This document shows, in pieces, positions 6,903 to 30,566 of a stretch of 64,000 nucleotides of DNA. Below the pieces are notes generated by a model. That model saw only the letters and a list, made by a program, of their open reading frames with translations, was not told the origin of the DNA and searched no databases. Position 1 is the first letter of the stretch. Each line of letters begins with the position of its first letter. Location: NCBI GenBank assembly GCA_038087875.1, contig JAXLNO010002254.1, positions 62,001 through 126,000 of the forward strand, given 5' to 3'. The position numbers were made by a program, and so were the translations under genes. This DNA comes from Malacoraja senta (lineage: Eukaryota).

Positions 6903-7163
6903 AGCCTCACACACTGATCTACTACTACACCCTGAACCACGGGAGTACTCATCTACCAGAATATAGTGTTGTGGGTGTTCTGGACGGTTGTGAGATACAG
7001 TATTATGACAAAAACATGGTCATTACAGTTCCAAGACAGAAATGGATGGCGGCTGCATTTGACAGGAATTACTGGGTAACAAATACGGTCTCTGAAACTG
7101 GTTTCCATGGAATCATCAAAGGGCAAGTCGATGAATGGATGCAGAGGCAGAACGAAACAGCAA
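6903..7163 (+). CDS. MHC class I heavy chain, alpha1 exon
   Basis: Acceptor ttgtgtctAG at 6901-6902 and donor GTtagt at 7164; 261 nt, phase 1/1. Reads (E)PHTLIYYYT..PEYSVVGVLDGCEIQYYD..VPRQKWM..YW..RQNET, with H3, Y7, Y59-W60, R84 and the N86 glycosylation site. Confidence 0.93.
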
Positions 7164-8929
7164 GTTAGTTCATTCATTTCAATACAATTGGAGTGTGATC
7201 AATGTTCATAAAAAAACATCTCAAAGAAATTTCTCGCTGTGCCAGAGACCCAGGTTTGATCCCGACTACATGTTTTCCCTGTGAACACAGATATTTCCTC
7301 CAGGTGCTCCGGTTTCATCCCATATCTTGAAAACGTGAGAGTTTGTAGGTTAATTGGGCTCTGTAAATTACTCTTGTGTGCTGAGAATGGGTGAGGAAAG
7401 TGGGATTACATAGATGTGTAGGAAGGAACTGAAGATGCTGGTTTACAGCAAAGATAGGCACAATGTGCTGGAGTAACTCAGCGGGACAGGCAGCATCTTT
7501 GGATACAAGGAATGGATGACTTTTCAGGTCAAGACCCTTCCTCAGACAGAGTGTTTCCCCTGACTTACTCCAGCATTTTGTGTCCATTTTGGGATAACAT
7601 AGAACTAGTGTGAAAGATGATCGATGGTTGGCATGGAATTGGTGGGCAGAATGGCCCGTTTCCATGCTGAGTTACTAACCTAAGAACTGCAGATGCTGCA
7701 AATGTGAAATAAAAACCAAAAATGCCATTGTCTGATGGCTTCATTGTCAGTTTATCACCATGGAAACCTGTCATTACCGTATTAGTGATACCCGCTATGT
7801 CCAACCATGCCTCCCACTCCTGTCTGTAACTTACACATTCTCACAATTCTGAAGCATTAATTTTGTTTCTCTTTCCATAGGTTCTGTTGAACCTGCTGTG
7901 TGTTCCAGCATTTTACAAATCATTAAAATGTTGGTGGCTTTTTGAATGGTTAAAATCCCTTGCGTACCTCACCAATTGTTTTTACTTTTATTGACAAATT
8001 TTGAATGAAATGTTGTGTGAAATATTTAAAGGATAACCTAAATGGCATTGTGGTTCAGCCGTAGTGATGGTGCCGTAGTGCCAGAGACCCAGGGTTGATC
8101 CTGGCCTCAGGTGCTGTCTGTACATAGTTTGTACGTACTCCCCGTGACCTGCGTGGGATTTCCCCGGATGCTCCGGTTTCCTCCCACACTCCAAGCCTGT
8201 ATGCCAAAGGGGATCACTGGTCACTGTGGACTCTAAGGGCTGTTTTCGTGCTATATCTCTAAATTATCTTGGGCACCAATTGTAAAGTAAGCTGTCCAAA
8301 TCCATCTGCACCACACTTGTATATCCATATAAGTTGCAATTGGACATGTTTTATATTGTAAATCAATAAGTCCTATCACCATTACTGTGTTAATTCAATG
8401 ACATTCGTAGTGTACCATTGAACAAAGCAGGACCAGGCGTGGGGGAACCATGGTGAGGTGGGGGACAAAGGAGGACCTGGTGTGGGAGACTTTCTAACTT
8501 TGTCGGTGCCCTTTATGTGAAGAATCTTGACATACGTTGGGTTTACAAAACAAAGACTTTCACTGTGACTTGTCACATGTCACAATAAAGTATCATTCAT
8601 TCATGATTAATTATTGCTGAAAACATTGCTTTTTGTTACCTCTTCGGTTACACATTAAACAAATTATATTATTAATCTTTAACTGGACTAAAACAGGGTG
8701 AGGGTACAAACAGGGAACAATACATCAAAATATTATGCACTGGGCATAATTTCTATCAATTTTCCACATCTTGCAATATTTATTATTATTTTCAAATTAT
8801 ATGTGAATACATGTGAATGACGTTTATTACATTATCATCTGATTCATTGAACCATGTTTATTGAATCATATTGCCTTCAAAAATAATTTTTATATTTGCA
8901 TTATTTATGGTGCGCTTATTATCTGCAAC

Positions 8930-9890
8930 ATTGTTATGTTTATGAGATTTATGAGCATATTGTCGGGGCTCAAGGGTGTGAACAAGAGGGAGAGATTGGG
9001 CAAGCCAGGGCTTTATTCCATGGAGCACAGGAGGCTGAGGGGTGTCATATAGGGGTGCTTAAAATCATGAGGGGAATTGATAGATGTATGCCCAGAGCCT
9101 TTTACCCAGAGAAGGAGAATCAAATAACCAGAGGACATGGGTTTAATGTGAGAGGGGGAAGATTTAATTGGAACTTGGGACAATCTTTGTGCTCAGAGAG
9201 TGGTCAGCATATGGAATGACCTGCCAGAGAATGGAGTTGCGGCAGGTACAATAACAATATTTAATAGACACATGGACAGGGACATGCATAGGTAGATATA
9301 AATGCTGGAGAAACTCAGCGGGTGAGGCAGCATCTCTGGAGCGAAGGAAATAGGCAACGTTTAGGGCCGAAAACCCTTCTTCAGACTGATGTGAGGGTGG
9401 GGGGAATGGGGGGGGGCAGGAAGAAGAAAGGAAGAGGTGGAGTCAGTGGGCTGAGGGAGAGCTGAGAAGGGGAGGAGAAAGTAGGGACTACCTGAAATTA
9501 GAGGTCAATGTTCATACCGCTGGGGTGTAAACTGCCCAAGCGAAATATGAGGTGCTGCTCCTCCAATTTACGGCGGTCCTCACTCTGGCCATGGAGGAGG
9601 CCGAGGGTAGAAAGGTCGGATTTGGAATGGGAGGGGGGAGTTGAAGTGCTGATCCACAGGGAGATGAGGTTGGTTGTTGCGAACCGAGCGGAGGCGTTTG
9701 GCGAAACGATCGCCAAGCCTGCGCTTGGTCTCACCGATGTAGAGCAGCTGACATCTAGAGAGAAACGTTTTGAATGATGTCTACCGATTCCAGGGTAAAT
9801 GGGACTAGCTTAAATGGGGTATCTTGATTAGCATGGACAAGTTGGGCCAAAGGGCTTGTTTCCCTGCTGTGTGACTCTCTATGACTGCTT
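8930..9890 (+). mobile_element. Degenerate CR1 3' fragment interrupted by a Penelope fragment
   Basis: ERLGKPGLYSMEHRRLRG..TRGHGF..QRVVSIWNDLP in shifted frames; the CR1 tail resumes at about 9775 after the insert. Confidence 0.75.
9295..9770 (-). mobile_element. Penelope-like element 3' fragment (GIY-YIG endonuclease end plus hammerhead-bearing terminal repeat)
   Basis: - strand QLLYIGETKRRLGDRFA..QHFNSPSH..KLEEQHLIFRLGSLHPSGMNID, followed by cagtctgaagaagggttttcggccctaaacgttgcc at about 9355-9387. Confidence 0.85.
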
Positions 9891-10689
9891 TATAGCAAAG
9901 AGCGCTGCTGCCTCACAGCGCCAGTGATCCGGGTTCAATCATCTCCAGTGCAGTCTGTGTGGAGTATAAGCATTCTCCCTGTGACAATGTTTGTTCTCCA
10001 GTTTCCTCCCACATACCAAAATGTGCTGAATTAGTAGATTAAGCCACCGCTGCAAATAGAGGTGGATTTGTGGCATTGATAGAAATGAGGAAGATCCGTT
10101 TTGGGGCAAATTAGTGTTGGAATAATTTTGTTCTCTGGGTAAAAGGCTCTGGGCATACACTCTATCAATTCCCCTCATGATTTTAAGCACCCCTATATGA
10201 TCACCCCTCAGCCTCCTGAGTGGGCTCAGGAGGCTGAAAGACCTCTTTCTCTGTCACATGGAATTATGGGCAGTTATTTATCCTTGAATTGCCTTCTTTC
10301 TCATTTTAGTCAACAATGTAAAATTGAACTAATTGTCTGGATTGAACTATTTAACAATTGTAGATGAAAAGAAGAGCAGAGGCTGCTTTCCTCCAGACAC
10401 AAAGTGCTGAGGAACTCAACGGGTCAAGCGGCATCTTTGGAGAACATGGGAAGGCAGATATTTCGGGTGAGGATCCTACTTCAGACTGAAGTTGGGTCAC
10501 ATTAGAACATGCTTTGTACTCACACTCGCAGTCCAGTGTTAGTTTTCAAGGATTTTTTGTTATTCACAGCTTGTAGTTGTTACATATTCAGCAGAGAGAA
10601 GACGAGACAAACTAAAGCACCTGCAAAACTCAACTAAAAGACCGCAGAAAGAAGCTTGAAAAGAAGGCTCTTATCTAAACAACGTACTT

Positions 10690-12491
10690 TCAAGAGAGAG
10701 TTAGATTTAGCTCTTAAGGCTAAAGGAATCAAGGGATATGGGGGAAAAGATTAGTTAAAACAAATGTAGGTCCCTTGCAGTCAGAAACAGGTGAATTGAT
10801 CATGGAGAACAAGGACATGGCAGACCAATTGAATAACTACTTTGGTTCTGTCTTCACTAAGGAAGACTTAATTAACTGCCGGAAATAGCAGGGGACCGGG
10901 GGTCAAATGAGATGGAGGAACTGAGTGAAATCCAGGTAGCCGGGAAGTGGTGTTAGGTAAATTGAATGGATTAAAGGCCGATAAATCCCCAGGGCCAGAT
11001 AGGCTGCATCCCAGAGTACTTAAGGAAGTAGCCCCAGAAATAGTGGATGCATTAGTGATAATTTTTCAAAACTCTTTAGATTCTGGAGTAGTTCCTGAGG
11101 ATTGGAGGGTAGCTAATGTAACCCCGCTTTTTAAAAAGGGAGGGAGAGAGAAAACGGGGATTACAGGCCAGTTAGTCTAACATCGGTAGTGGGGAAACTG
11201 CTAGAGTCAGTTATTAAAGATGGGATAGCAGCACATTAGGAAAATGGTGAAATCATTGGACAAAGTCAGCATGGATTTATGAAAGGTAAATCATGTCTGA
11301 CGAATCTTATAGAATTTTTCGAGGATGTAACTAGTAGAGGGAGAACCAGTGGATGTGTTATATCTGGACTTTCAGAAGACTTTCGACAAGGTCCCACATT
11401 AGAGATTAATATACAAACTTAAAGCACACGGTTATGGGGGTTCAGTATTGATGTGGATAGAGAACTGGCTGGCAGACAGGAAGCAAAGAGTAGGAGTAAA
11501 CGCGTCCTTTTCAGAATGGCAGTCAGTGACTAGTGGGGCACCGCAAGGCTGAGTGCTGGGACCCCAGCTATTTACAATATATATTAATGATTTGGACGAG
11601 GGAATCGAATGCAACATCTCCAAGTTTGCGGATGACACGAAGCTGGGGGGCAGTGTTAGCTGTGAGGAGGGTGCTAGGAGGCTGCAAGGTGACTTGGATA
11701 GGCTGGGTGAGTGGGCAAATGCAAGGCAGGTGCAGTATAATGTTGATAAATGTGTCCACTTTGGTGGCAAAAACAGGAAAGTAGACTATTACCTGAATGG
11801 TGGCCGATTAGGAAAAGGGGAGATGCAACGAGACCTGGGTGTCATGGTACACCAGTCATTGAAAGTAGGCATGCAGGTTCAGCAGGCAGTGAAGAAAGCG
11901 AATGGTATGTTAGCATTCATAGCAAAAGGATTTGAGTATAGGAGCAGGGAGGTTCTACTGCAGGTACACAAAATTGCTGGAGAAACTCAGCGGGTGCAGC
12001 AGCATCTATGGAGCGAAGGAAATAGGCAACGTTTCGGGCCGAAACCCTTCTTCAGACTGCAGTTCTACTGCAGTTGTTCAGGGTCTTGGTGAGACCACAC
12101 CTGGAGTATTGTCTACAGTTTTGGTCTCCTAATCTGAGGAAGGACATTCTTGCCATAGAGGGAGTACAGAGAAGGTTCACCAGACTGGTTCCTGGGATGT
12201 CAGGACTTTCATATGAAGAAAGACTGGATAGACTCGGCTTGTACTCGCTAGAATTTAGAAGATTGAGGGGGGATCTTATAGAAACTTACAAAATTCTTAA
12301 GGGGTTGGACAGGCTAGATGCAGGAAGATTGTTCCCGATGTTGGGGAAGTCCAGAACAAGGGGTCACAGTTTAAGGATAAAGGGGAAATCTTTTAGGACT
12401 GAGATGAGAAAAACATTTTTTACACAGAGAGTGGTGAATCTCTGGAATTCTCTGCCACAGAATGTAGTTGAGGCCAGTTCATTGGCTATAT
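10690..12491 (+). mobile_element. CR1 LINE RT fragment with frameshifts; its 3' tail continues at 14203-14500 after an L1 insertion
   Basis: ORFs 10947, 11553 and 12074: KSPGPD, PEDWRVANVTPLFKKG, LGPQLFTIYINDLD, KFADDTK, VRPHLEYC, RTRGHSLR. Confidence 0.92.
11964..12061 (-). mobile_element. 98-bp hammerhead-bearing insert with a 12-bp target-site duplication
   Basis: gttctactgcag at both 11952-11963 and 12062-12073; removing the insert restores CR1 EVLLQL. The insert has an intact CTGAAGA-AGGGTTTCGGCCC-GAAA-CGTT core on -. Confidence 0.85.
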
Positions 12492-14202
12492 ATATTTTTT
12501 ATTTTTTTATTTTTTATTTATTTTTTAGAAGTATTTTACATTACAGTAATCTGCAATAACGTAAATTTATACAGTTCTTGTACCACTTCTGTTTTTCAAC
12601 TTTAATAGAAAAGAAGAATAGAAAGAACTAGCAAGGACAGTCAGTGAGTGAATGAAAAAGTGGTCCAGGAACACACATGTGAACCTAAACCACAAGAAAT
12701 AGTTAAAGAAGAAAAGAAAAAAAGAGAAAAAAGAAAATAAGATAGGACAATATGAAAGGGATGTGCCTTTTTCTTATCTGTACTCACCCCTCGCCAGGAC
12801 CTAAAACCATTTATTATCAACATTTTGTTGCACCCTATGTTTGTAATAGGTCGATATATGGAGACCAAATCTTTTGGAATTGGTCTTGTTTACCTGCTAG
12901 GAGGAATCTCATATCTTCTAGATGTAACAATTCCGACATATTAGAAGTCCACATTTTTATTGTTGGCGTAGGAGCATTTTTCCAAAATTTCAGTATTAAT
13001 TTTTTTGCCGTTATTAAGCCATAACTAAGAAAACTCCTTTGAAACGAAGTCAGCTCCAAACTTGCTTCTATTGTTCCAAAAATAATCAGTTCTGCATTCG
13101 GTTTCAGTTTTATTTAAAATAATTTAGTGAAAATTTCAAAAATTTCATTCCAAAATTTTTGAACTTTTATACAAAAAACAAAAGAATGTGCTGTAGTTGA
13201 TTCTTGGACTAGGCATTTATCACAGTTTGCAGAGGTATTTGGGTAAAATTTACTTAATTTAGCTTTTGAATAATATAATCTATGTAAAATTTTAAATTGA
13301 ATCAGAGTATGTCTTACGTTAATCGAACATTTATGCACATATAATAGATGTTTATCCCAACTCTCTTTCGAGATTTTTATAGCTAGTTCCTGTTTCCATT
13401 CTCTTCTGATCCCGTCCGATGATGGAATTTCTATATTTAAAATGGAATTATATAGGTATGATATTAAATTAGCTGATTCCGCTTTTATATTCATTATCCC
13501 ATCTAATAAGTCAGGAGAGATATTTTGATATTCCCGTGTATACTTTTTCAAATAGTCACGTAGTTGGAAATATTTAAAATATTGATTATTATTCAAGTTA
13601 TATTTAAGTTGTAATTGGTGAAATGTTAAAAAACTTCCGTTATCATACATATCTCCAAACGTTTTAATTCCTGCTCTTTCCCAATTTATAAAAGCTCTAT
13701 CTATCATAGAAGGTTTAAACGAAGGATTATTCATTATAGGTGAAAGAAGTGATAGATTTCTTAATTTTAACAATAATTTTATTTGTTTCCAAATTCTAAT
13801 TGTACTGTGAATAATTGGATTTTTACTATATATTGTATTCTTTATTTTTGTTGGTGAGAGAAGGATCGCTCCTATGTTAAAAGGGGAGCAGTCCTCTCTC
13901 TCCATTACTATCCAATCCACCTGCTGGGCCGAATTGTCCAACAGGTGAATCATATTTTTGACATTTGTGGCCCAGTAATAATATAAAAAATTGGGGAGTG
14001 ATAATCCACCAAATTCCTTAGGTTTACACAAATGTTTTCTTTGGATTCTGTGGGATTTATAGTCCCATATAAAATTTATAATATCAGCATCCAATTTTTT
14101 AAAAAAACATTTTGGGTAAGTATATCGGTATTGACTGGAATAGATATAAAATTTGTGGTAAAAAGATCATTTTTATAGCATTTATTCAGCCTATAAGAGA
14201 CA
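12492..14202 (-). mobile_element. 5'-truncated L1 (ORF2 C-terminus, 3' UTR, A-rich tail)
   Basis: ORF 13114-14094 is homologous to the C-terminus of ORF2 at 47122-50913 (CDKC..HSFVFC); TSD tcattggctatat at 12479-12491 and 14203-14215. Confidence 0.92.
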
Positions 14203-14988
14203 TCATTGGCTATATTTAAGAGGGATTTAGATGTGGCCCTTGTGGCTAAAGGGATCAGGGGGTATGGAGAGAAGGGAGGTACAGGATACTGAGTTGGATG
14301 GTCAGCCATGATCATATTGAATGGCGGTGCAGGCTCGAAGGGCCGAATGGCCTACTCCTGCACCTATTTTCTGTGTGTCTATGTTTCTAAAAGCAGGAAT
14401 GGGGTACTGATTCTAGATGCAGGCATGATCATATTGAATGGCGGTGCTGGCTCGAATGGCCGAATGGCCTACTCCTGTGCCTATTTTTCTATGTTTCTAT
14501 AATTAGTATACATTCGGCTATTTGTGGTGTTTCTTGAAAACACGAAGACGAGAGAATGTAAAGGATCTGCAGAACAACTAAAAGACTGCAGAAAGCAGCT
14601 TGAAAAGGAGGCTCTTCATCGATACAACATAATTATGTTTTATTCAGCTATCATTGTTTGTAGAGTTTCTTATTGGAATGAAAACATCATCCAAGTTTTG
14701 ACCTTTCCTTATTACTCCTGGTCCCAGGGGCATGGTTGGCATTAGCTCATTACCTTCATCCTAATAAAGGGTTGTTGTTCACAGTTGTGCCTAGATTTTT
14801 ATCAATTATAACCTTGAGTTCACAAACTGTTCTTTGTCTCTGGGCTAAAGTTCACAGACTCTCCTTTTCAAGGAGTGAGCAGTTTTAAGCAAACTGACTT
14901 CAGCAAATCCTTACAAATTCCATCAACCCCCCCCCCCCCCCACTTTGATTCATCAATCAATGCCAGAGGGAATGAATCATCTAAGTAA

Positions 14989-15662
14989 AGGGGCCTGTCC
15001 CACTTACGTGTCCTTGGAACGCAAATTACGCGTTGAGCCGCGATGGTCTGACGAAGGTCGGGTGCGATTACATGCGTACGCACAGCCGTCTGGAGCGTGT
15101 GACACATTATTTGAAGATGGACACAAAGCTGGAGTAAGCCAGTGGGACCGGCAGCATCTCTGGAGAGAAGCAATGGGTGACGTTTCATGTCGAGACTCTT
15201 CTTCAGTCTGAAAAGAAGGGTCTTGACCCGAAACGTCACCCATTGCTTCTCTCCAGAGATGCTGCCGGTCCCGCTGACATTTTGTGTCTATCTTCAATTT
15301 TCTTGGCCCCGCTCTGGGAGTAGAAGTGGGGGCGGATCCGGACCTCAACGGCCGTGAGCCCCAGGCCGAGTTCGGCGATCGTTTGCCTCCTTCTGCTGCT
15401 GTTCAAAGTGAGACTTTGCGTCGCGCCAGGGTCTTGGGCCTGTCCCACTTTGGCCGTCAGTTCCGCGACAGGCCGTTGGCGCGCGAAGATTTCGTTCACT
15501 ACAAAATTATCGGAGCCCCGCGCGATGTCGCGCACAACTACATACCCCTCCGCGCTTCCAAGTGGGACCGGCCCCGCGCGGCCATACGATGCCCGTGCGC
15601 CTCAACGCGACCACGAGGTCGCATAATTTGTGTACCAAGGACACGTAAGTGGGACAGGCCCT
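14989..15662. mobile_element. PIF/Harbinger-type MITE with nested inserts
   Basis: Terminal inverted repeats of about 40 bp (gggcctgtcccacttacgtgtccttgg..caaatta), TAA on both flanks (14986-14988, 15663-15665), and a third TIR-like start at about 15437. Confidence 0.75.
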
Positions 15663-16648
15663 TAAAAATATCAAGGAAAGGTAGCGCAGCTACACATCAC
15701 TGGATATCTTTAACCTGTTCAATGCCACCGCCGAGTACACTAGGGGTCATGGCCAATAGTGAAAAATAAACTTGGCAGTGAACAGCTTAATGGTCTCCAT
15801 ATTTTAGAGAAAGCCTTCAATGCCCATGAGGGGTGAGCCTTATTATATCTATGTTTCTCTAAATATAGGAAGCACTTTTGTGGTAAAAGATGGGTCAGCT
15901 CGGGCCTCGAAAAGATCCAACCTTATGTGCAGCTTTATATTTGTTTATATGCAATAAGCAAAAAGAACACAATAGAAGATAAAACATGATAATAACTATA
16001 AGCAAAGCCAAGAGATCGTGGCCTTACACGAGTTGCTGCCTTGCAGCACCAGAGACCCTGGTTTGAACCTGACTACGAGTGGTGACTGTACGGAGTTTGC
16101 ATGTTCTCCCCGTAACCTGTGTGGCTTTTCTCTGAGATGTAGGTAAATTGGCTTGGTGTAAATGTAAATTGTCCCTAGTATGGGCTGAAGGGCCTGTTTC
16201 AGCACTGTATCTCCAAAGCAGTGGGGGGGTCGTGACCCCCAAGGGGGTCGTTTGGGGTTTTCCGGGGGTCATGAAGGGGTTGTAAAGAACATCAATTTGT
16301 TGAGCCCATTTTTAGGAACCTAACAAAGGTACATACCACACACAGTTTTTTATTCACGTATGCGCGTACGTATACACGGGGCCTATGAGAGGGGGGTGCA
16401 GGGGGTACATCGTACCCGGGCTCGGAGTCCAAAAGGGGCCCGGGAGCTGAAGGAAGGGGGGGGGGGCGGGAATTTCCTGAAATCTCAGAAAATTTTTGCA
16501 TATATTTTGTGAAGACTAGCATTCACATTTTGTGCCTTCAGAGTTTTATATATCGTAATTCGTAGAAATTGTGATCCATAATAAAGCAGGGAATTTTCAC
16601 AAGCGGATGTGTGGTCGGGGTAACCTGATTAAAAGAGGGGGAAGGGGA

Positions 16649-17250
16649 AGACCCATCACTACTGATGGATCCTCCCTGTAGGAGGAGGGAGAGCACTAGG
16701 ACCCAGCAGAGTCATCACTACTGATGGGTCTTCTGTGTAGGTGGGGGGGAGCACTAGGACCCAACAGAGTCATCACTACTGATGGATCCTCCCTGTAGGA
16801 GGAGGGAGAGCACTAGGACCCAGCAGAGTCATCACTACTGATGGATCCTCCCTGTAGGAGGAGGGAGAGCACTAGGACCCAACAGAGTCATCACTACTGA
16901 TGGATCCTCCCTGTAGGAGGAGGGAGAGCACTAGGACCCAGCAGAGTCATCACTACTGATGGGTCTTCCGTGTGGGGGGGCAGGGGGGGGGAGCACTAGG
17001 ACCCAGCAGTCATCACTACTGATGGGTCTTCCCTGCAGGAGGGGGGAGAGCACTAGGACCCAGCAGAGTCATCACTACTGATGGGTCTTCCCTGCAGGAG
17101 TAGGGGGAGAGCACTAGGACACAGCAGAGTCATCAATACTGATGGGTCTTCCCTGCAGGAGGGGGGGGGAGAGCACTAGGACACAGCAGAGTCATCAATA
17201 CTGATGGGTCTTCCCTGCAGGAGGGGGGGGGGGAGCACTAGGAACCAGCA
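16649..17250. repeat. Minisatellite, about 10 copies of a unit of about 59 bp, inside the hAT element
   Basis: Unit agagtcatcactactgatgg(a/g)tc(c/t)tccctgtaggaggagggagagcactaggaccca(g/a)c, with variable G runs. Confidence 0.95.
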
Positions 17251-17539
17251 ATCAGACCATGTGCTGTCTGCATGGTTTAGGTTGTGGGCCTGGTGCTATG
17301 CCGGGAACTCTGGTGAGGTGATGGCTCTGGCCCGCTGGTGGCCGGTGGAGAGGCGAGGGTCGGCAGAGTCGCTGGTGGAGGCCCGTGGGGAGCTGGAGTA
17401 GAGATATGGGCAGCAGCATCATTGGCTTTCTGAAGACAGTGAAGGTCGGCGACAGTGGCTGCGGTGGCCTCGCCCGGGGAGGTGGTGAGAGTCAGGAGCC
17501 GCGGCTGTTTCAGTGGTCCGGGCCTGGGTTTGGGTCAGT

Positions 17540-17645
17540 GTGTGGATGGGTGGGTGTGAGTGAGTGGGTGAGGGTGTGTGTGTGTGTGTGTGGATGTGTG
17601 TGGGTGTAGGTGAGTGAGTGTGTGTCTGAGTGTATGTGTGTGTTA
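17540..17645. repeat. GT-rich microsatellite
   Basis: Imperfect (GT)n/(GAGT)n run. Confidence 0.9.
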
Positions 17646-17879
17646 GTGGGAGGGTGAATTTTATAAATGAAGTTAAAACCATTAGATCTGTTGAACTTGT
17701 TAACAGACTATTGACTTGGTAACCTGTTTCCAAATGTTTGTGTTAGCTTCAGAATACTATTAACAATTCCAGCAACAGTAGCTTCTGCAGAGGTCATTTA
17801 GCAAACTCAAGCTGATTAAGAATTATTTAAGGTCGACATTGTCTCATGAACGTCTTGTGGATTTGGCCAGGCTAAGTAT

Positions 17880-18365
17880 TCAAAGTCAAAGTCAGTTTTA
17901 TTCATCACATACACCCGAAGGTGCAGTGAAGTGAATTTGCCAGCAGTGATACACGTAAAAAGAACACACAATACACAATAAAATTGAACACAAACATCCA
18001 CTACAGCATTCTTCACTGTGGTGGAAGGCAACAAGTTTCAGCCAGTCCTCCTCCTTTGTTCACCTGTGTTCGGGGCCATAACCCCTCCGTAGTCGCATCT
18101 AGGGACGGACCAATGTACAAGGCCCTCTCGTCGGGATGATCCAAACTCTGACGTTGGGACGGACAAACACACTCTGCGGCTTGGAGGTCCCGACTCGGCA
18201 CTTTCCTAGTGGAGACCGCAGCTTCAGGATGTTATAGGCCGCAGGCCAGCGGTTCGAGCTCGTCTCTGGTGATCCCCGGCAAGGGATCCCAGGATCCGGA
18301 TGGTAAGTCCACGCCACGCCCGCGGCTAGAAGCTCCGCAGACCACAGCTCCACGGTGTCAACGTA
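17880..18365 (-). mobile_element. Unclassified non-autonomous retroelement, copy 1 (others at about 20945-21640 and 27160-27640)
   Basis: Shares tttatt(c/g)tcacat..acc, catcca..cttcactgtg(g/a)tggaaggc and gatggtaagtcc blocks with the other two copies; GC-rich body, no ORF. Confidence 0.6.
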
Positions 18366-18977: not shown

Positions 18978-20726
18978 ATGTCTTCCAAGACGCGCATGTA
19001 TAGTGAAACATTTCACAAGTTGGGCTTCACAAGCATTGTTCCAAATCCGTGGTCAAGCTGCAATGTGTTCTCTGTGCCAAGGTGTTGAGTCACGAGAGCA
19101 TGAAGCCCAGCAAACTGAAGATCCATTTGGAGTCTTGTCACAGCAACCTGGCGGGGAAGAGCGTGGACTATTTCAAACGAAAAGAAGCCATAACTCAAGG
19201 GATCCCGCATCTATTCAACGGGTCACTGTGCTCATCAAAATGAAGCAGCGTTGGAGGCTTCATACCGGATTGCTTATCGAATCGCACAGACTAAGAAACC
19301 TCACAGCATCGGTGAAGAGCTTATCAAGCCATGCCTTCTCGAAACAGCGAAGTTGGCGCTGGGGGAAGAGCAGTCAAACAAGTTCAGGCAGATTTCCCTT
19401 TTGAATGACACAGTCAAAAGTAGAATCTCGGATATGAGTAATGATATTCTGCTGCAAGTAGTGAGGGCTGTGACGAGCAGTCCAGTGTATTCACTGCAAC
19501 TGGGCGAGTCAACAGATGTTGCCTCATGTTCCCAACTGCTAGTCTACATTCGTTACCTCGATGGAGTAGCCATGACGGAGGAGTACATGTTCTCGGAGCC
19601 ATTGGCTACTACCACTCGGGGAGAAGATGTGTTCAGAATGCTGGAAGCCTTCCTCATCAAACATGAGCTTGGCTGGAAATGCCTTGTTGGGATGTGTACA
19701 GATGGGGCACCTTCCATGGTCGGTTGCAGATCCGGTTTCCAAGACTTCGTGAATGATGTCGCTCCACATGTCTCCTTCCCCCACTGCATGATACATCGCT
19801 ATGCTTTAGCGATGAAGACTCTCCCTCTTGGTCTTCGAGAAGTGCTTTCAGATGTGGTGAAGATTGTGAACCACATCCGAGAGAGTGCAACAAACTCAAG
19901 AATCTTCAAGCGATGTGTGAAGAAATGGGCATCGATTTCACTATTCTGTTATTCCACACAGAGGTGCGCTGGCTTTTGCGTGGTAAAGTTCTCAATCATG
20001 TGATTCAACGTTGAGAGGAAATAGTGTTGTTCTTGGAGAGAAGGGGTACTGAGAAGGAGAATCAGCTTCATGAAAAGATGCAAGTTGAACTGTTCGTGAT
20101 GAAGGTTGCTTACTTGGTTGACTTCTTCGCTGAGGTGAATTCCTTGAACCTGTCGCTTCAAGGAATCCTCCCAATGGCATTCAGGAGGAACCTTTACCAG
20201 AGAACAGACGGTGACATGGCTATCTTCCCTGAGATGACGACTCTCCTGGATGCTACGCCTGATGCTGAATGCCACTTCCACGAGGAGATCTCAACCCACC
20301 TTCTGGCAATTAGTGAACCCATCGAACGTTACTTCCCCAGACTGGACGACCGCTCTCGTGATGAGTGGATGCTCTGACCCTTTTCCGTTGAAGACGGTGG
20401 CATCAGCGATACTGACGTGACCGAAGGTTGAATTTTACTGAATTCGTGAAGATGCGCAACTCAAGAGTGACTTCATGGAACAAGAGCTCGCCACGTTTTG
20501 GCTGAAAGTGAAGGAATGTCCTGCTCTTTCGAAGAGGGCCCTGACCCTATTGGTCCATTCCCCCTCAACCTCTCACTGTGAGGGTGGATTCTCAACTATG
20601 GTAACTCTGAAAACGAAGGTACGCAATAGGCTTGTGATCGACACTGACATGAGGTGCTGCCTGTCGAGCATTCGTCCACGTTTTGATTGCCTGATGACTG
20701 CGAAGCAATTTCAGCCATCCCATTGA
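18978..20726 (+). pseudogene. hAT transposase pseudogene (BED finger, DDE core, dimerisation domain; ZBED8/SCAND3/FAM200-like family)
   Basis: ATG at 18978. Fragments: QCVLCAKVLSHESMKPSKLKIH; KKPHSIGEELIKP; ESTDV..QLLVYIRY; CTDGAPSM; HCMIHRYALA; FWLKV..STSHCEGGFSTM. Spread over several frames. Confidence 0.93.
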
Positions 20727-20944
20727 CTGAGCAATGGCAGACATGTTTTAATAAATCGGGCTGTTTTTTTTCAAATTTTGTTTCAGAGGTCACGGTACTG
20801 ATCAAGAATGCCTGATGGGGTCGTGGGGCCAAAAAGGTTAAGAACCACTGCTCTAAAGCTTAAAACTAAAGGGGCTAATAAAGGCCACAAAGTGGCTTTA
20901 GTGAGTCGGATTACAGAAAATCCCACATCTTTTTCATGGTTTCA

Positions 20945-21640
20945 TGGTTAGTTTATTGTCACATATACCAATTAAGGTACATTGAAATGCAGACTACCAT
21001 ACACCATACTAAAAAAAAGCAACAAGACACACAATAACATAAAAGTTAACATAAACATCCACAACAGAGGAGCCCGCACGTTCCTTACTGTGATGGAAGG
21101 CAATAAAGTCTAATCTCCTTCCTCTTTATCTCCCGCAGTCGGGGCAATCAAACAATCTGCAGTCGGTGGTCGAAACCCCCCGTTGAGGAATCGAAACTCC
21201 CACGTCGGAGCGGTCGAAACTCTTGCGGCTTGGAGATCCCGGATGTCGGTCTCGACCGTAGACCACGGGCTCCGCGATGTTAAAGTCTTGCAGGCTCTCA
21301 CAGTTGGAGCCCTAAAGTCGATCCCCGACAGGGATCGCGAGCTCCATGATGGTAAGTCCACAGGCTCCTGCGATGGATCTCCCGGTCGATCTCTAGCAAA
21401 GGCCGCCATTCATCAATGTTAGGCCGCATTGTGGACGGAGATACGATACAGAAAATATCGCATCTACGTCGAGGTAAGAGATTAGGAAAAGTTTCCCACA
21501 ACTCCCCCAACCCCCACCCCCAAAACAAGCTAAAGAAAACTAAAGAATATACATTTAACACGTACAAAACAGACACAAAGAAGGAAGGGACAGACGACTT
21601 TTGGCGAGGCAACCATTGCAGCAAAAGGTGGATTGCTTAA
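20945..21640 (-). mobile_element. Unclassified non-autonomous retroelement, copy 2 (longest)
   Basis: On - it ends ..tcaatgtaccttaattggtatatgtgacaataaa, resembling the tails of Rex1-type fragments here; its GC-rich core is shared with 17880 and 27160. Confidence 0.6.
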
Positions 21641-21649
21641 GGATATAGA

Positions 21650-22530
21650 AGGGAATATGTGCTTGGAGTTTGGCGAGGTTTGGTTTCACCAAGGAAGACA
21701 TGTAGAATAGTAAGGACCATTAATAGTAAGTACATCATAAAATCCTCCAACATTTTTGCCACCTCCAACGGGATCCCACTACTGATCACATCTTCCCATC
21801 TCCACCCGTTTCTGCTTTCCGCAGAGACCGTTCCCTCCGAAACTCCCTGGTCAACTCGTCCCTTCACACCCAAACCACCCGCTCCCCGGATACTTTCTCC
21901 TGCAACTGCAGGAGATGCAACACCTGTCCCTTTATGTCCCCCCCTCGACTCCGTCCAAGGACCTAAAGTCTTTCCAGGTGAGGCAGAAGTTCACTTGCAC
22001 CTCTTCCAACCTCATCTACTGTATCCGCTGTTTCAGTTGTCAACTTCTCTACATCAGTGAGACCAAGCGCAGGCTCGGCGATCGTTTTGTTGAACACTTC
22101 CCCTCAGTCCGTCTTACCCTACCCGATCTCCCGGTGGCTCAGCACTTCAACTCCCCCTCCCATTTCCAATCTGACCTTTCTGTCCTGGGCCTCCTCCATT
22201 GTCAGAGTGAGGCCCAGCCCAAATTGGAGGAACAGCACCTCATATTTTGCTTGGGTAGTGTATACTCCAGCGGTATGAACATTGACTTCTATTACTTTCG
22301 ATAGCCCTTGATTTCTCTCTCCATCCCCTCCCCCTTCCCAATTCTGCCACCAGTCTTACTGTCTCCGCCGACATTCTATCTTTGTCCCTCCCCTGACATC
22401 AGTCTGAAGAAGGGTCTCGACCCAAAACAATGCCCATTCCTTCTCTCCAGGGAAGCTGCCTGACCCGCTGAGTTACGCCAGCATTTTGTGTCTCTCTACG
22501 ATTTTAACATCTGCAGCATCTGCAGTTCTT
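21650..22530 (+). mobile_element. Penelope-like element 3' fragment (GIY-YIG plus terminal repeat)
   Basis: ORF 21915-22304 reads FTCTSSNLIYCIRC..QLLYISETKRRLGDRFVEH..KLEEQHLIF; hammerhead-like ctgaagaagggtctcgacccaaaac at about 22404-22428. Confidence 0.88.
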
Positions 22531-22569
22531 TCTTACACATGGAGAATCAATGTGGAGAATGCTAACATG

Positions 22570-23110
22570 CAGGGACACTTTGAAGTTAAGCAAGAAGGAG
22601 ATGTTGGATCACTTGAAGAGAAATGTGGATAAATCCCCAGGATAGAGGGGTGTAGTGGATGATAATAATAATCGTTGAAAACATTAGTGCCGTGCTGGTT
22701 TCCGATGGGCACGGTGACGGACGCACCACACATCTCTCCTCCATGCAACTGGCAAGCTCCTCTTTTATCTCTACACATGCGTCTTCCATCAACGTCTTCT
22801 GCATCATCTTGATTGGCCGTCCTGGGTCAAGTCTTCCATGGGTGGGTTCCCACAGCACAACCTTGTTTGCTGGCATTTCTGGGTGGCGGAGCCAGTGACC
22901 TGCGAGCCTCATCCTTCTCAACGTGATCTTCTCGGTCAGAGGTGGATTCTCCCCATAGAGCTGGGCGTTGGTGATGTGGTCCCTCCATCTGACATTTTGA
23001 ACTTTTCCGAGCATTCGGGTGTAGGTACCATCGAGAGACTAGGACAGTGCTGGAGTGAGAGTCCATGCCTCACACCCGTACAATAATATGGTCTCTACAG
23101 TTGTACGGAA
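22570..23110 (-). mobile_element. RTE-clade LINE 3' fragment
   Basis: ORF 22586-23014 reads NVRWRDHITNAQLYG..RRMRLAGHWLRH..VVLWEPTHG..GRP, typical of the RTE C-terminus, with an ATT/ATC-repeat tail. Confidence 0.8.
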
Positions 23111-23272
23111 GGCCAAATATTCAGGCTGTAGTTCAGTGACAAGTAGAGTTCTGCAGGGATCTGTGCTGTGACCCTTGCTACTTGTGACATATATAAATGA
23201 CTTGGACCCTGGTGTTCAGAAATTACCCAGTCATAACAATTAATCAAATAATGATTTTTATTTTTATTTCAG

Positions 23273-23546
23273 ATTATCACTACGTTCAAGGACAGTTTGG
23301 TTGTGAGGTGAACGATCACAGTCCCACTGTAGGGATATTGAAGTTGGCTTTTGATGGAAGATATGCATTTAGTTTTGATAAGGACAAACTAAAGTGGACG
23401 GTGCATGATCCAATAGCTGAGCTTCAAAGAGAAATGGGACAAGAATGAAAAAATGAACCGTTATTTCAAGAGCTTGTTAGAACATGACTGTGTGGATCTA
23501 TGGCTTACATACTATGCAATTGGAAAGACATACCTGACCAGAAAAG
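23273..23546 (+). CDS. MHC class I alpha2 exon (274 nt, frameshift near 23422)
   Basis: Acceptor tttcAG at 23271-23272 and donor GTgagt at 23547. Frame 1: (N)YHYVQGQFGCEV..AFDGRYAFSFDKDKLKWTVHDPIAE. Frame 2: FKEKWDKNEKMNRYFKSLLEHDCVDLWLTYYAIGKTYLTRK. Both C101 and C164 are present. Confidence 0.93.
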
Positions 23547-24212
23547 GTGAGTTCAGAACAAAGGATGTTGTTTTGTGATGGTAGGCAATGAGTAATATTT
23601 CACTCTGAGGCAATGAGTAATATTATCTCTGACCCAATCATGACAGAGGGAAAGGTCATTCGGCCCATTGATTCTATGCTAGTTTTCTATGCAATGTCGA
23701 CAAACTGTTCCACAGCTCTCTCTCACAACTTGCACTCAGCTCCCTCGGATTCTCCTTGCATTCAGCTCTACGACGGATAATTTGCAATGTCCAACTAACT
23801 CACCGGCACGTCTTTGGTATACGGGACAAAACTGGAGCACATGGAGGAAGCCAACTGAGTCATAAGGTCATAAGTGATGGGTGCAGCATTAGAACATTCG
23901 GCCCATCAAGTCGACTTCGCCAGTCAATCATGGCTGATCTATCTCTCCCTCCTAACCCCATTCTCCTGCCTTCTCCCCATAACCCCTGACGTGCATACTA
24001 ATCAAGAATTAAAAATATCCATTGACGGACTCCACAGCCTTCTGTGGTAAATAATTCCACAGAATCACCACCCTCTGACAAAATAAATTCCTCCTCATCT
24101 CTTTCCTAAAGGAATGTCCTTTAATATTGAGACTATGACCTCTCGTCATAGACTCTCCCACCATTGGAGACATCCTCTCCACATCCACATCTATCCAAGC
24201 CTTTCACTATTT

Positions 24213-25588
24213 GTTTGTTTTTAAAATATTTTTATTAGAAGCATGTGCATATCATAATACAAACATTTCTTATATATCAATCCTACTTAGCTAATAGGTG
24301 GGAGTCCAGCTATCAAAATAATAGTGGTCCTCCTTTATCAATTGTATATTAAATCTGCTTCTATTTAGTTTTTTTTTATAGATAGAAAGTGAGAAATTAA
24401 AAAAAAAAGGCATGAAAAAGAAGAATGGAATAATTTACCAATAATACAACTTTGGAGATAGGTCCGTAGGTTATAAAGCATAACTATTCATCTAATCCTG
24501 AGCTTGGATTTCAGTCAGATTCCTATGCTGAACCAATTTACCCTTTCAAAAAATCAATAAATGGAGACCATATTCTATTAAATAATTCATGTTTTTCAAT
24601 TAAGACAAGTCTAGTTCTTTCCAAATGTAAGGTCTCCGACATTTCCATAATCCACATTTTAATTGTGGGGGTTATAGGACCTTTCCAAAATTTTAATATT
24701 AATTTTTTCCCAATTATTATACTATAATCAAGAAAGTTTCTTTGGTTTATTGTAAGTCTTAGGCTTTGTTCTGATATTCCTAATATTATTATGAGTCGGG
24801 ATCCAATTGGGTATTGACTAATTCAGAAATTATTCTGAAAATGTCCGTCCAGAAATTTTTGATTTTTATACAATTTACAAAGGTATGAGTTAAGTTAGCC
24901 TCTAAATGCTGGCATTTATCACAAATAGGAGAGATATGTGGGAAGATTCTATTTAATTTTGTTTTAGAATAATGTCATCTATGTAATACTTTAAATTGTA
25001 TTAAGGCATGTCTGGCATTTAATGAGCATTGATGTATATATTGTAGACTTTCGTCCCAAATATCTTTCGTTATGGGTTGGCCTAATTCATTTTCCCATGT
25101 GTGTCTATATAAATCCGTCGGCGGGACCTCACTATCTAAGAGGGTATTATAAATATGAGATATTAATTTTTCTGTATTAGGATGTTTATTCAAACATTCA
25201 TCAAGGATTTCTGGTTCCCTAGTTCTGTAATCTTGTGTATTTGATTTAATGTAATCTCTAAGCTGTAAATATCTAAAAAAGTTATTTGAGTGTGGTCCGT
25301 AAATCTGTTGTAACCCCTGAAATTACAGAAAAGTGCCTTTCCTATAAAGATGTCCCATCTTTTTAATTCCATAATTTTTCCATTGTGTAAAGCCTTTATC
25401 CAACATGGAAGGTTTGAATAAAGGGTTGTTTATAATGGGGAGACAGTGACAATTATCCAATTTTAAAGTCTTTTTTAATTGTTTCCAAATTCGTATACCA
25501 CTATATATTATAGGATTTTCACTATAGGTGTTTTAATGCAATTTTGTGGGAGCAAACATAATCGAACCAATTTCAAAAGGCAAACAGT
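24213..25588 (-). mobile_element. 5'-truncated L1 of a more divergent subfamily, inserted in a - strand CR1 3' fragment (about 23860-24212 and 25589-25840)
   Basis: ORFs 24975 and 25190 are homologous to the ORF2 C-terminus (CSLNARHALIQFKVLHR); TSD ctttcactattt at 24201-24212 and 25589-25600. Confidence 0.85.
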
Positions 25589-27159
25589 CTTTCACTATTT
25601 TGTATGATTCAATGAGGTCCCCCCTTATTCTTCTAAACCCCAGCAAGTACAGGCCCACTGCCATCAAATGGTCATCATATGTTAACCCATTCAATCCTGG
25701 GATCATTCTTGTACACCTCCTCTGGACCCTCTCCAGAGCCAGCACATCCTTCCTCAGATATGGTGCCCAAAATTGCTCACAATGCTCCAAATGTGGCCTG
25801 ACCGGCGCCTTATAGAACCTCAGCATTACATCCCTGTTTGACAGGGAGAAAGTGTAATTGATGTCTTTCATATTAGTTAACCATGGATTTTCTTGACCAC
25901 AGTTGACAGCCCCTAATGGGATTGCATGTCTATCACACGTCTCTATAGAGCACAGCGTTAAGCTTCGAAGGGCAAAATTTACACGAGATGTGCAGGTCAA
26001 GTGTTTTTTTGCACAGAGAGAGCTTGATACCTAGAATGCGCTACCAGGAGTGGTGGTAGAGGAGGACATGATAATGGTGCTTAAGAAAGTTTTGGACAGG
26101 CTCGTGGGTATGCAGGGAATACAAGGATATGGAACACATGCAGGCAGTGGAGATGAGTTTTGGTTTAGTTTAGAGATAGAGTATGGAAACAGGATCTTTG
26201 GGCCACTGAGTCTGCACTGACCAGCAATTGCCCATTCACTATTTTTGTCCTACAAGCTAGGGACAATTTACAGAAGCCAATTAACCTACAAACCTGCACG
26301 TCTTTTGTATTTGGGAGGAAACCGGAGCCCCCAGAGAAAACCCACAAGGTGACAGAGAGAACGTACAAACTCCGTCCAGACAGCACTCTAGTCAGGATCG
26401 AACCCGGGTCTCTAATGCTGTAAGACAGCCACTCTATCACTGCGCCACTGTTTTGCCTTAGTTTAACTTGGTATCCTGTTCGACATGGACATTGCAGGCT
26501 GAAAGTCCTGTTCTTGTACTGTTCTATGTTCTATATATTCTCATTGGACATGGCAGAGTTTTCCACTCCTCCAGCCTCCATGTTGAATACTTACTCCCAG
26601 TTTAAATCTGATTCAATTAGTCAATCCATTTCTCCCTCCCCTCCTGCCCTGATCCCCATTCTATATTTTGAAATAGTCATTCCCTTTTTCACTCCCTGGT
26701 CTGTCTACTATCCCCACAACTTTCCTCTACTTTCCTGTCTTGGTGCATGCAACATCTATCCATTTACCTCTTCCCTTCCCACTGTCCATAGACCCAGGTA
26801 GTTCTTCAAAGTGAAACAGCGTGAAACACTTGCACTTCCAGTCAAATCTACTGCATATGGTTTTCATGACGTAATCTTCCACATTGCATCAATGAAACAA
26901 ATTGAATGGCTGCTTTCTGGAGAACCTGCATTCAATCCATGGGACTTTCTAAGATTCCTAATTCCTGCCACTTTAATTCTCCATTCAACACCCACCATGA
27001 TCCATCCATCTGTACCTCTTACACTAGGATAACAAGGGTGACAGTAACCTTGAGGACCAACAACTCAGCTTCTGTCAGGACATGTTGCAGCCTTTCACAC
27101 TCCATTCCACATTCAACGAGTTGTATTCCCTGTCAATAAAAGAACTGGTCATTTCATAA

Positions 27160-27640
27160 GTTCATGTTCATTTATTGTCACATACACCAATTGGTGTAGT
27201 AAAATTCACTGGCCAGGTCAGTCATACAATTTTAAAAAGCAACAGACTCAAAAACACATTTTGACATAAACATCCATCATAGTGACTCCTACACATTCCT
27301 CACTGTGATGGAAGGCGAAAATAAAGTTCCAAGTCCTTCCCTTGTTGTTCTTCCTTGGTCGGGGGCCTCGAGCCCCCCGTTGAATGGACGGTCTTGAGTC
27401 CCGTAGCCGGCGGCGTTCGGGCCCTCCGCGTCGAGGTGATCAGCTCCCGCATCGGGGGATTGTCAGCTCCCCTGCGCCGGGCGATCGAACCTCGCGTCGG
27501 GGCTGGACGAACCTTCTGTGGCATTGGAGCTCCCGACTAGCCTCTCCCGAGACTGGGAGCCCTTGATGGTAAGTCCGCAGGCAAGGGATCTGCTCCGATT
27601 GTAAGTCCACACCCCGTGGTGGGGCTCACGACAGTCCTTT
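27160..27640 (-). mobile_element. Unclassified non-autonomous retroelement, copy 3
   Basis: Same tail and gatggtaagtcc blocks as 17880 and 20945. Confidence 0.6.
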
Positions 27641-28569
27641 TCAACTGTTAAGTTGAAGTCAGAAAGAACAGATGCAAGAAGTATGAAGAAGGACACCAAG
27701 CTGAAACATTACGTAACCATGTCTTCCAGATGCTGCCTGAGCCACTGAGTTACACCTGCACGTTTTTGTGTTTTTTAATTACAGTTAAGTTATCCAGCTG
27801 CAAAATCAGGACAGCCTGACCTACTTGAGTAGTGCAGTATGTGCTGCATTTTATATAACTCTGTTTAGTTTCATGCATGCAGAGATCCAGTGAAATGGTT
27901 TGGATGGAACAGCAGATGCTGGACACCCCGTCCCTTCTCTCCAGAGATGCTGCCTGTCCCGCTGAGTTACTCCATCTTTTTGTGTCTATCTGCAGTGAAA
28001 TGGTTGTTCTGCATTCTCCCCAGTCAAGTCATACTGTACATAAGTACAATTCGTCCTCTTCTGGAACAGCACGCAGTGATCCACCACATTCCAGGACTAT
28101 CTTGCAGCTTCCAAGTCTCTGAGAAGTCTGATTTTGCCCTAAGGAAATACCCAATTTCACATTTTCTCATGTTAAAGCCCAGTGCCATAACAGCACTGGA
28201 TTGATGAAGTAGAGGCACGTGCCTCAGTTTAAGTTTTTCTGTTTCAAGATTGTGATCAAACCCTCGTCACTGGAACTGTGTCGCAGTGCCACCCATTACG
28301 TATCAGTCCCAATTATCTTTCAACATGCTGGAATCACTTGTTTTTTAATCCTTTTTAGACTTTTTTTCATGAATTGTTCTGCATAAACAGTTATGCTACA
28401 ACAAAGTTAAGCGCAGCTACCACTTAGTTCCAGAGACGTAACAACACAAGAGATAGTGTTGGAAGAATGATCAAACTCACACATAGTGGTTAGAATCCAT
28501 AGTCTTTTATTAGTAACTCTGCAGAGGAAACACAAGGTGCTTTCTTCTCAGCTTGCTTACTACCAGTCT

Positions 28570-28574
<5 letters not shown>

Positions 28575-28610
<36 letters not shown>
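28575..28610. repeat. (AG)n microsatellite
   Basis: Perfect AG run of about 18 units. Confidence 0.97.
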
Positions 28611-28613
<3 letters not shown>

Positions 28614-30299
28614 TCTAATAAGCCTGTGGGCGGAGCCACAGTATGAGTGACACTAATCTACAGATAGGCACAGGGATAAGTTTCGGTTTATTATTGTCAC
28701 GTTTAGTTTCGAGGTACAGCATGAAAATAGGCCTTTTGGCCCACTGAACCTGTGCTGACTAACGACCACCCAAACATTAGTTCTATCCTACACACTAGGG
28801 ACAATTTACAGAAGCCCAAAAACTTACAAACCTGCACGTCTTTGAATGTGACGGAACTGTAGCACCCGGAGATAACTCACATGGTCACAGGGAGAATATA
28901 TGAACTCTATATAGACAGCACCCATTGTCAGGATTGAACTTTGGTCTGTGGTACTGTAAGGCAGCAACTTTCCCTCTGCGCCACTGTGCTGCCCATGTAC
29001 TGAGGTAGTGTGTAAAGCTTTGTTTTGCATGCTATCCAATTGGATGAGGTAACAAAATACATATATATGATCATCAAACTCAAGAACTGTAGGTAGAGCA
29101 AAGGGGAAGGTACAGAGTGTGGCATGTAGTTCTCAGCAATGTAGCACACCAGTTCCATTAGATAAGTGTTTCGACACGAAACGTAACACATTCCTTCTCT
29201 CCAGAGATGCTGCCTGACCCGTTGAGTTACTCTAGCATTTTGTGTCTATCTGCGGTTTAAACCAGCATCTACAGTTCCTTCCTGCATAGTTCTATAAACA
29301 AAGTCCACTGTCTGTAATGGGGTAGTGGTCAATTGGACAGTACCGTAGCTTATGGAACGATCATTCAGAAGCCTGATTTTCTCCTCGGTTATCAAGTTTC
29401 CGAGTAAGCCATTTGGTCCTCTAACCTGCCCACCATTCAATATGACCATGGCTGACGTTCCTCAGGCATCAACTCCTGTTCGATGTCAGTTCCTCATTGC
29501 ACTCAGTTCTCCAATTTAAGTTTAAATTAAGTTTAACTACCGCCACATTAAATGCTTCCAATGATTTTGTCTTCACAAATCTCTGGCGCCAGAGAATGAC
29601 CACACTCTGCAAAAAGAGATTTTGTAAACAAATGACTGGTCTCTTTTATCTCTTATTGAAGAGGAGTGAAAATACTGCCAATTTTAAGCTTGTCCCCTCC
29701 CCAATTGACCCTCATTTCGTAACTTGTCAATTATTTATTATTGTCAATAATATGCCCTAGTGAAAAGATTTGCCGTTGGTATTAGTTTATTATTGTCACA
29801 TGAACTGTGATATAGTCAAAAGTTTGTCTGTGTGTTATCCAATCAGATCATACTACACATGTGCAATCAAGCCATCCACAAGTAGAACAGTGCAAAGAGA
29901 AAAATTCTCAGAGTGCAGAATATCGGGTTACAATATCATAGCATTACAGTTACAGAGAAAGTGCAGATCAAAAAGAGTTGCAAGGATCACAATGAGATTG
30001 GTTGGAAGATCAGGGCAACATCTTATCTTACATGAGAACCATTCAGTAGTCCAATAACAGTGGGGAAGAAGCTGTTCCTGAATTTAATGGTACGTACTTT
30101 CAAACTTTCTTGTGTACTGTCTTAACAGGGAGCGTGCGATCCCTTTTAAACCACGTGGTTGGTTGATGGTGACGAAAGAGGCAAAATGGGGCAGATGTGG
30201 ACAGTAACTTGGTTGTTGTAGTGGACTGAAGAATATTTTGTGGTGGGTGACTGTGCAAGTTTTACTGAAGATGAAAATAACCATCTTACTGTCTTGTAG

Positions 30300-30566
30300 T
30301 TTCCCCTGAGGTCACTCTCGCTGCCCGCCCTGATGATCATTCAGTCCTGTACTGCACTGTGTTTGGATTTTACCCACCGGCCATCAATGTCAGCTGGTTG
30401 CAGAATGGTCAACATGTCTCTGAGACAAAATCTTCTGGGGTCACACCCAACAACGATGGAACATATCATCTAAGGTCTGTCCTTGAGTATGATCCGTATG
30501 ATGGGAAACAGTATTCCTGTCATGTCGATCACAGCAGCCTGCCCGGTGGGAAGACCATCATCTGGG
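30300..30566 (+). CDS. MHC class I alpha3 (IgC1) exon
   Basis: Acceptor ttgtAG at 30298-30299 and donor GTaaga at 30567; 267 nt. Reads (V)SPEVTL..LYCTVFGFYPPAINVSWLQNG..PNNDGTYHLRSVL..YSCHVDHSSL..IIW. Confidence 0.96.

Follow-up and report, generated by a model that had tools for sequence, protein, structure and literature searches.

Which MHC (major histocompatibility complex) class I lineage does the heavy-chain gene in a 64,000-nt stretch of the skate Malacoraja senta genome (contig JAXLNO010002254.1, positions 62,001 to 126,000; hereafter the window) belong to, and can this copy still make a protein? An earlier reading of the letters (hereafter the sequence-only reading) had noticed a groove with a mix of kept and lost peptide anchors, had proposed a nonclassical lineage from it, and had left open whether that lineage was already described or new. 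We find that the gene very probably belongs, as a skate member, to UGA, a nonclassical lineage of sharks and rays. It lies on the plus strand in four exons (alpha1, alpha2, alpha3 and membrane anchor) with phase-1 junctions and canonical AG/GT borders at all eight splice sites, and it follows the plan of a class I-like heavy chain: the two disulphides and the N86 sequon are present, alpha3 is a C1-set domain, and the chain spans the membrane once. The stretch to which the sequence-only reading had drawn attention (6903-30566) begins and ends at true outer exon ends, namely the start of alpha1 and the end of alpha3.

The assignment to UGA is carried by the comparison with solved structures and by the trees. 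Every extracellular domain of the window is closest to PDB 9CH4_A among the solved chains, and by a wide margin. The alpha1 exon matched this chain with an E value of 2e-38 (next, the nurse-shark classical chain 6LUP, 1e-9), the two alpha2 pieces with 4e-15 and 1e-13 (next best 2e-7 and 0.05), and alpha3 with 2e-34; judged as sequence similarity, the relation of the exons to 9CH4 is beyond chance. The entry, released 2026-03-18, bears the title "Crystal structure of shark nonclassical MHC CLASS I, UGA", and the whale-shark member of the clade described below (P0182) is ~92% identical to 9CH4_A over all 268 residues (4e-177). The window pieces are about 65-70% identical to the shark chain, and the gapless alignment of the Amblyraja radiata orthologue with that chain spans 266 residues (E 9e-118). 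Residues common to the window and the shark chain include C31, F70, I73/I74, W81, F99, L159, L167, Y171, K146, W147 and the N86 sequon. The differences are that position 84 is K in the shark chain and R in skates, and that the copy in the window comes from a skate, has a frameshifted alpha2 exon, and has its leader and tail exons absent from the window.

The sequence-only reading had named a domain-wise phylogeny as a way to check its proposal. We computed maximum-likelihood trees of 70 class I sequences drawn from UGA itself, its sister lineage, a multicopy shark lineage, chimaeras, the classical type of sharks and rays, and bony vertebrates; the set included neither named UDA, UEA and UFA references nor CD1 and MR1. 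In the careful tree of 270 columns (alpha1-alpha3), the window fell in a skate subclade (support 100/100) within the UGA clade (100/99), which was sister to a second conserved shark-and-ray lineage (99/97). The UGA clade was split from the clade of all classical-type sequences with a support of 97 in the alpha1-alpha2 tree. It was recovered with a support of 99 both on alpha1-alpha2 and on alpha3 alone, with the same placement of the window. The window thus neither clusters with classical sequences nor regains its lost anchors on proper alignment (see below), and the question of a described or a new lineage is answered by the 9CH4 title, the whale-shark match and the trees in favor of a described one, UGA.

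The nearest intact relatives are the skate orthologues XP_032898133.1 (A. radiata), XP_078272153.1 (Rhinoraja longicauda) and XP_055521885.1 (Leucoraja erinacea), with 94%, 93% and 90% protein identity to the window, respectively; the alpha1 exon is 93% identical to that of A. radiata. They have the same exon structure and collinear introns. In the window, the introns measure 16 kb, 6.8 kb and 2.7 kb, and are packed with repeats of the long interspersed nuclear element (LINE) type and others. Between 6234 and 37327 they match the UGA loci of A. radiata and R. longicauda collinearly, with an identity of 85-95% (blastn). The orthologues differ from the window copy in being intact (334-341 aa) and in ending with a DYQNI or DYQTI tail, where the window has a 2-base deletion and no tail exon.

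As assembled, the reading frame of the window copy does not stay open across alpha1, alpha2, alpha3 and the transmembrane exon. Frame A of the alpha2 exon is open up to ...HDPIAE, and frame B carries the remainder, FKEKWDK... (FKEKWDKNEKMNRYF...). In the DNA alignment, the window reads GCTGAG--CTTC against GCTGAACCCTTC and GCTGAGTCCTTC in A. radiata and R. longicauda, so that two bases are missing at 23421/23422, both from a 3-base C run. The codon lost corresponds to HLA position 142 (residue 138 of 9CH4); it encodes Pro or Ser in the intact skate genes, and a single C of it is left. Translation of the assembled copy stops after about two thirds of the groove domain, and no membrane-bound heavy chain is possible. 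Owing to this frameshift, the window copy probably makes no protein.

Outside this site, there is no second defect, neither a further stop nor a frameshift, in 897 coding bases, and the ratio of nonsynonymous to synonymous substitution rates (dN/dS) is 0.34 and 0.30 between the window and two intact orthologues and 0.31 between the intact orthologues. Because the ratio is like that of intact genes, purifying selection must have acted until very recently, and the deletion is either young or an assembly error; an old pseudogene under relaxed selection is rejected on the same values. We lean, with some reserve, towards a real deletion, because only a 3-base C run is affected, which is untypical of a homopolymer error, and because skates have many spare copies of the gene. 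Provided that the deletion is real, the window copy would have become a pseudogene only recently, as one of a gene family that has expanded in skates.

The end of the gene bears on the same question. Neither tblastn nor a motif search nor sensitive blastn with the 4-kb regions of the orthologous loci located the cytoplasmic-tail exon in the window. In the relatives this exon lies at 87707-87745 of locus L001 and at 41022-41060 of locus L002, ~4.4 kb downstream of the transmembrane exon in R. longicauda, and it encodes DYQNIPPNQNVPC or DYQTIQPNQNMRC with a tyrosine sorting motif. A YxxPhi motif is present in the tail of almost all full-length orthologues examined, in the form YQNI, YQTI or YENI in batoids and YNVI, YNTV, YNVV or YNAV in sharks. 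It is possible, though in our view unlikely, that the window holds an intact, working UGA gene in which an assembly or polishing error has created the 2-base gap and a run of N conceals the tail exon. The dN/dS values, the eight canonical splice sites, the lack of any other stop or frameshift and the position of the N run where collinearity ends all fit such a gene. However, the deletion takes two of only three Cs and not one base of a long run, and the tail exon would be expected ~1.2 kb past the last collinear base, while none of that 1.2 kb flanks the 138-base N run. Furthermore, skate genomes hold many near-identical UGA copies, so dead ones are to be expected. At the other end, the leader exon was not found in the window by tblastn or fuzzy motif search; since intron 1 spans 15-32 kb in the relatives and only 6.9 kb of the window precede alpha1, the leader exon lies upstream of the window.

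The number of UGA copies differs between R. longicauda and sharks. On the R. longicauda chromosome CM130181.1 (locus L002) there are at least 10 predicted UGA proteins, 90-99% identical to one another and 91-94% to the window, and L. erinacea has at least two UGA loci together with several transcript variants that are not distinguishable from paralogues. Sharks have one or two copies. UGA has been described as single- or low-copy (PMC12562908), whereas it is multicopy in R. longicauda. We also observed that the NCBI models of L. erinacea LOC129716032 (P0152, P0153, P0155 and P0169; 574-663 aa) combine UGA exons and a GPR139-like seven-transmembrane receptor in one protein (PF00001 and PF00129), which is probably an annotation artefact joining neighbouring genes.

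The alternative that the gene represents a new, undescribed elasmobranch class I lineage draws on the fact that databases offer automatic names only ('F10 alpha chain-like' or 'MR1-like'). Under such names, intact orthologues are present among batoids in Amblyraja, Leucoraja, Rhinoraja, Pristis, Mobula, Hemitrygon and Hypanus, and among sharks in Heptranchias, Heterodontus, Pristiophorus, Stegostoma, Rhincodon, Scyliorhinus, Cetorhinus, Carcharodon and Mustelus. An exhaustive profile-free search with alpha1 returned only three representative clusters above 1e-30, all of them skate or shark. We consider a new lineage highly improbable: the clade spans at least 20 shark and ray species, UGA is named as a shark-and-ray lineage in a review (PMC12562908), and the PDB title, together with the trees and the whale-shark identity, refutes it unless that title is wrong.

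To compare the groove residues, we aligned the window domains with the 23 members of the lineage and with the classical UAA chain of Triakis scyllium (P0077), which needed no gaps through alpha1-alpha2. Positions were converted to HLA numbering, with HLA-A2 as the reference, by offsets anchored on Y7, Y59, N86, C101, W133, W147 and C164. All individual residues called by the sequence-only reading stood in this alignment: Y7, Y59, R84, N86 (in an N-E-T sequon), Q96, K146, W147 and Y171 are kept; T143 is changed to F, Y159 to L, W167 to L and Y123 to A; F70, I73, I74 and W81 lie on the alpha1 helix; and there is an extra, unpaired cysteine, C31. Of the eight classical peptide-terminus anchors (Y7, Y59, Y/R84, T143, K146, W147, Y159 and Y171), the window has six and differs at F143 and L159, while the classical Triakis chain has all eight in the same alignment. 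The claim of a nonclassical lineage is thereby borne out, both by the loss of two anchors, T143 and Y159, and by the position of the window outside the classical shark, ray and bony-vertebrate clade in all trees. Classical shark UAA (PDB 6LUP; Triakis O46840) resembles skate UGA in its domain plan, disulphides, N86 sequon and R84, and differs in having W167 along with all eight anchors and in belonging to a different clade. That the gene is classical or classical-derived (UAA/UBA-type), with anchors seemingly lost through misalignment, can practically be dismissed in spite of the six anchors, the N86 glycosylation site and both disulphides, as the gapless alignment to the classical shark chain still yields F143 and L159, alpha1 is only about 30% identical to 6LUP, and the trees, which refute this identity, set the window apart from every U-type sequence of sharks, rays, chimaeras and bony vertebrates.

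The anchor pattern seen in the window is the signature of the whole UGA lineage. Among the 23 members, L159, W147 and F99 are invariant (23/23), L167, W81, I74, K146, Y59 and G97 are found in 22, Y171, Y7 and D163 in 21, C31 in 20 and F70 in 19. Besides F99, G97 and D163, the changes L114, Y155 and F156 are lineage-wide as well. The window has every residue of the groove signature L159, L167, F99, G97, D163, W81, F156, Y155 and C31, each of which is present in 20-23 of the 23 members, and the groove as a whole is highly conserved between sharks and batoids. Two of the residues noted in the window do not belong to this signature. First, position 84 is Q in eight members, K in eight, R in four and E in three, and R84 is a skate feature, kept only in skates. 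Second, F143 occurs in 14 of 23 members and is therefore not lineage-wide.

The sequence-only reading had also proposed a bulky hydrophobic end at the F pocket. This part is carried by W81 and F143 only; the remaining positions of this pocket are Q77, E80, L116 and A123. Neither is an unusually greasy groove supported: by a crude count over 41 groove positions, 28 are hydrophobic in the window and 25 in the classical shark chain. For HLA-A2, the count is 27 of 41.

What an intact UGA does may be sketched from these features. By analogy with other class I-like chains, it would pair with beta2-microglobulin, and the tail tyrosine of the YxxPhi motif would let adaptors sort it to, or cycle it through, endosomes, as in CD1. 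We propose that it would display one conserved class of ligand, hydrophobic and lipid-like, rather than diverse peptides held at both termini, because the groove hardly varies and has lost Y159 and T143, the residues that grip the ends of a peptide. The lipid-like part of this proposal is taken from the review, where UFA and UGA are called CD1-like and where a crystal structure and mass spectrometry, cited as a personal communication of unpublished data, suggest lipids like those of human CD1d (PMC12562908); UFA is further treated in PMC10751288.

The ectodomain of the A. radiata orthologue, predicted from a 21-row alignment, had 9CH4_A as its top PDB fold match (Z 23.1; predicted local distance difference test score, pLDDT, 77.8). 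Behind it, ZAG, chicken YF1*7.1, HFE, CD1, FcRn and classical chains tie at Z 19-20, so that the fold ranking beyond 9CH4 does not discriminate ligand types.

CD1, a group of class I-like molecules that present lipids in tetrapods, may work much as UGA does: intact UGA also has a YxxPhi tail and is reported to bind lipids (PMC12562908), and the folds of chicken CD1 and CD1c align at Z 19-20. The skate YQNIP tail resembles that of human CD1b. The likeness has its bounds, in that classical class I folds score as high as those of CD1, the 60 best PDB sequence matches of the intact orthologue include no CD1 chain, and CD1 appears in the window matches only through alpha3 and fused beta2-microglobulin. 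Moreover, Y7, Y59, K146, W147 and Y171, which UGA keeps, are not known to be kept in CD1. In MR1, Lys43 forms a Schiff base with the vitamin-B-derived ligand. This lysine ('...qlKepr...' in bovine MR1) faces a threonine ('...viTvpr...') in the skate orthologue, and the window has T as well.

Chicken YF1*7.1 (PDB 3P73 and 9EB2-9EB6) is a nonclassical class I molecule that keeps part of the classical anchors and binds acylated ligands, namely lipopeptides and N-acylated amino acids. Its fold ranks near the top after 9CH4 (Z 20.1-20.2), and its sequence is among the best alpha2 matches (3e-6). It belongs to a bird lineage and is about 29% identical to UGA, which implies no common origin other than that of class I. 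By analogy, and as a rather long shot, the ligand of UGA may be a small acylated molecule (a fatty acid, an N-acyl amino acid or a lipopeptide, for example) that is gripped at its carboxyl end, instead of a glycolipid of the CD1d type. The idea comes from the retained clamp of K146, W147 and, in many members, R/K84 together with Y7, Y59 and Y171, and from the replacement of Y159 and W167 by Leu and of Y99, R97 and H114 by F, G and L. The skate copies are many and nearly identical, and the few differences between them fall on the alpha1 helix (HLA 58, 62, 66, 83 and 85); they might, with the same low probability, be tuned to several such ligands.

Several observations weigh against our account of a dead copy of UGA, a lineage that would display a conserved, lipid-like ligand. 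The window still has six of the eight classical anchors, and by the crude count its groove is hardly greasier than a classical one. The report of lipid binding by UGA is a personal communication in the review. The predicted model is only middling in its pLDDT, and many class I-like folds score equally against it once 9CH4 is set aside. A dN/dS equal to that of the intact pair and the lack of a second defect also fit an assembly error, and the absence of the tail exon coincides with the N run, so that this exon may be hidden rather than lost.

The sister lineage of UGA, represented by L. erinacea XP_055486430.1 (P0006, auto-named 'MR1-like'), is the nearest clade in the trees and has L159, F156, Y155, D163 and the LNHG...LPEYS and GFHGI motifs in common with UGA. 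It differs in being only about 40-46% identical and in having H59, W167, no C31 and a 12-residue insert before alpha3. PDB 8GM8 gave no strong match from either this lineage (P0006) or the multicopy shark lineage (P0337). A 127,421-nt contig of L. erinacea carries a UGA copy (XP_055486429.1) and the sister-lineage gene XP_055486430.1 together, making the two lineages close neighbours in the little skate.

The features of the window are collected in the table below, which also includes the mobile elements and other open reading frames (ORFs) around the class I exons. The three ORFs in the intron after alpha1 seem to be remnants of a single decayed gene, which may have encoded a transposase.

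Table. Coordinates of the UGA exons, their defects and other elements in the Malacoraja senta window
Feature	Start	End	Strand	Remarks
alpha1 exon	6903	7163	+	261 nt, phase 1 at both ends; acceptor AG 6901-6902, donor GT 7164-7165; codes the groove helix with F70, I73, I74, W81, R84 and the N86 sequon, also C31
alpha2 exon	23273	23546	+	274 nt instead of 276, frameshifted; Pfam MHC_I 1.7e-6
2-base deletion site	23421	23423	+	DNA alignment against the A. radiata and R. longicauda loci
Premature TGA	23446	23448	+	reached in the shifted frame, 8 codons past the deletion
alpha3 exon	30300	30566	+	immunoglobulin C1-set domain, intact; Pfam C1-set 4.8e-20; canonical splice sites
Connecting-peptide/transmembrane exon	33251	33359	+	intact; ends in basic stop-transfer RKKRR; tblastn with skate orthologues
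End of collinearity (37327), then N run (37551-37688)	37327	37688		blastn against orthologous loci L001 and L002
Decayed reverse-transcriptase fragment	10947	12559	+	within class I intron
Decayed reverse-transcriptase fragment	13114	14094	-	within class I intron
Three consecutive ORFs	19251	20726	+	intron after alpha1; 250, 117 and 83 aa, none with a Pfam match
Tandem repeat	~38400	~38600		past the N run, after a GC-rich stretch; one frame reads repeated ANWRTCGE units
LINE, apparently intact	45246	50913	+	
ORF1 of this LINE	45246	46316	+	356 aa, coiled-coil
ORF2 of this LINE	47122	50913	+	1263 aa; endonuclease, reverse-transcriptase and zf-RVT domains
Second LINE-type element	53099	56139	+	
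Endonuclease ORF of second element	53099	53899	+	
Reverse-transcriptase ORF of second element	53881	56139	+	752 aa

Taken by itself, the window copy matters little, as UGA is already named, its crystal structure is solved and it is annotated in related skates. The gene adds a further member, probably a dead one, to a known lineage and is incomplete at both ends of the window. It nevertheless ties the residue pattern to UGA, with L159, L167, W81, C31, K146 and W147 being lineage-wide and R84 and F143 not. It also gives an example of a skate UGA copy that was inactivated very recently, by a deletion that is present as assembled and that we judge, on a modest balance, to be real. Finally, it is one more sign that UGA, for which a single or low copy number has been described, forms a multigene family in skates.

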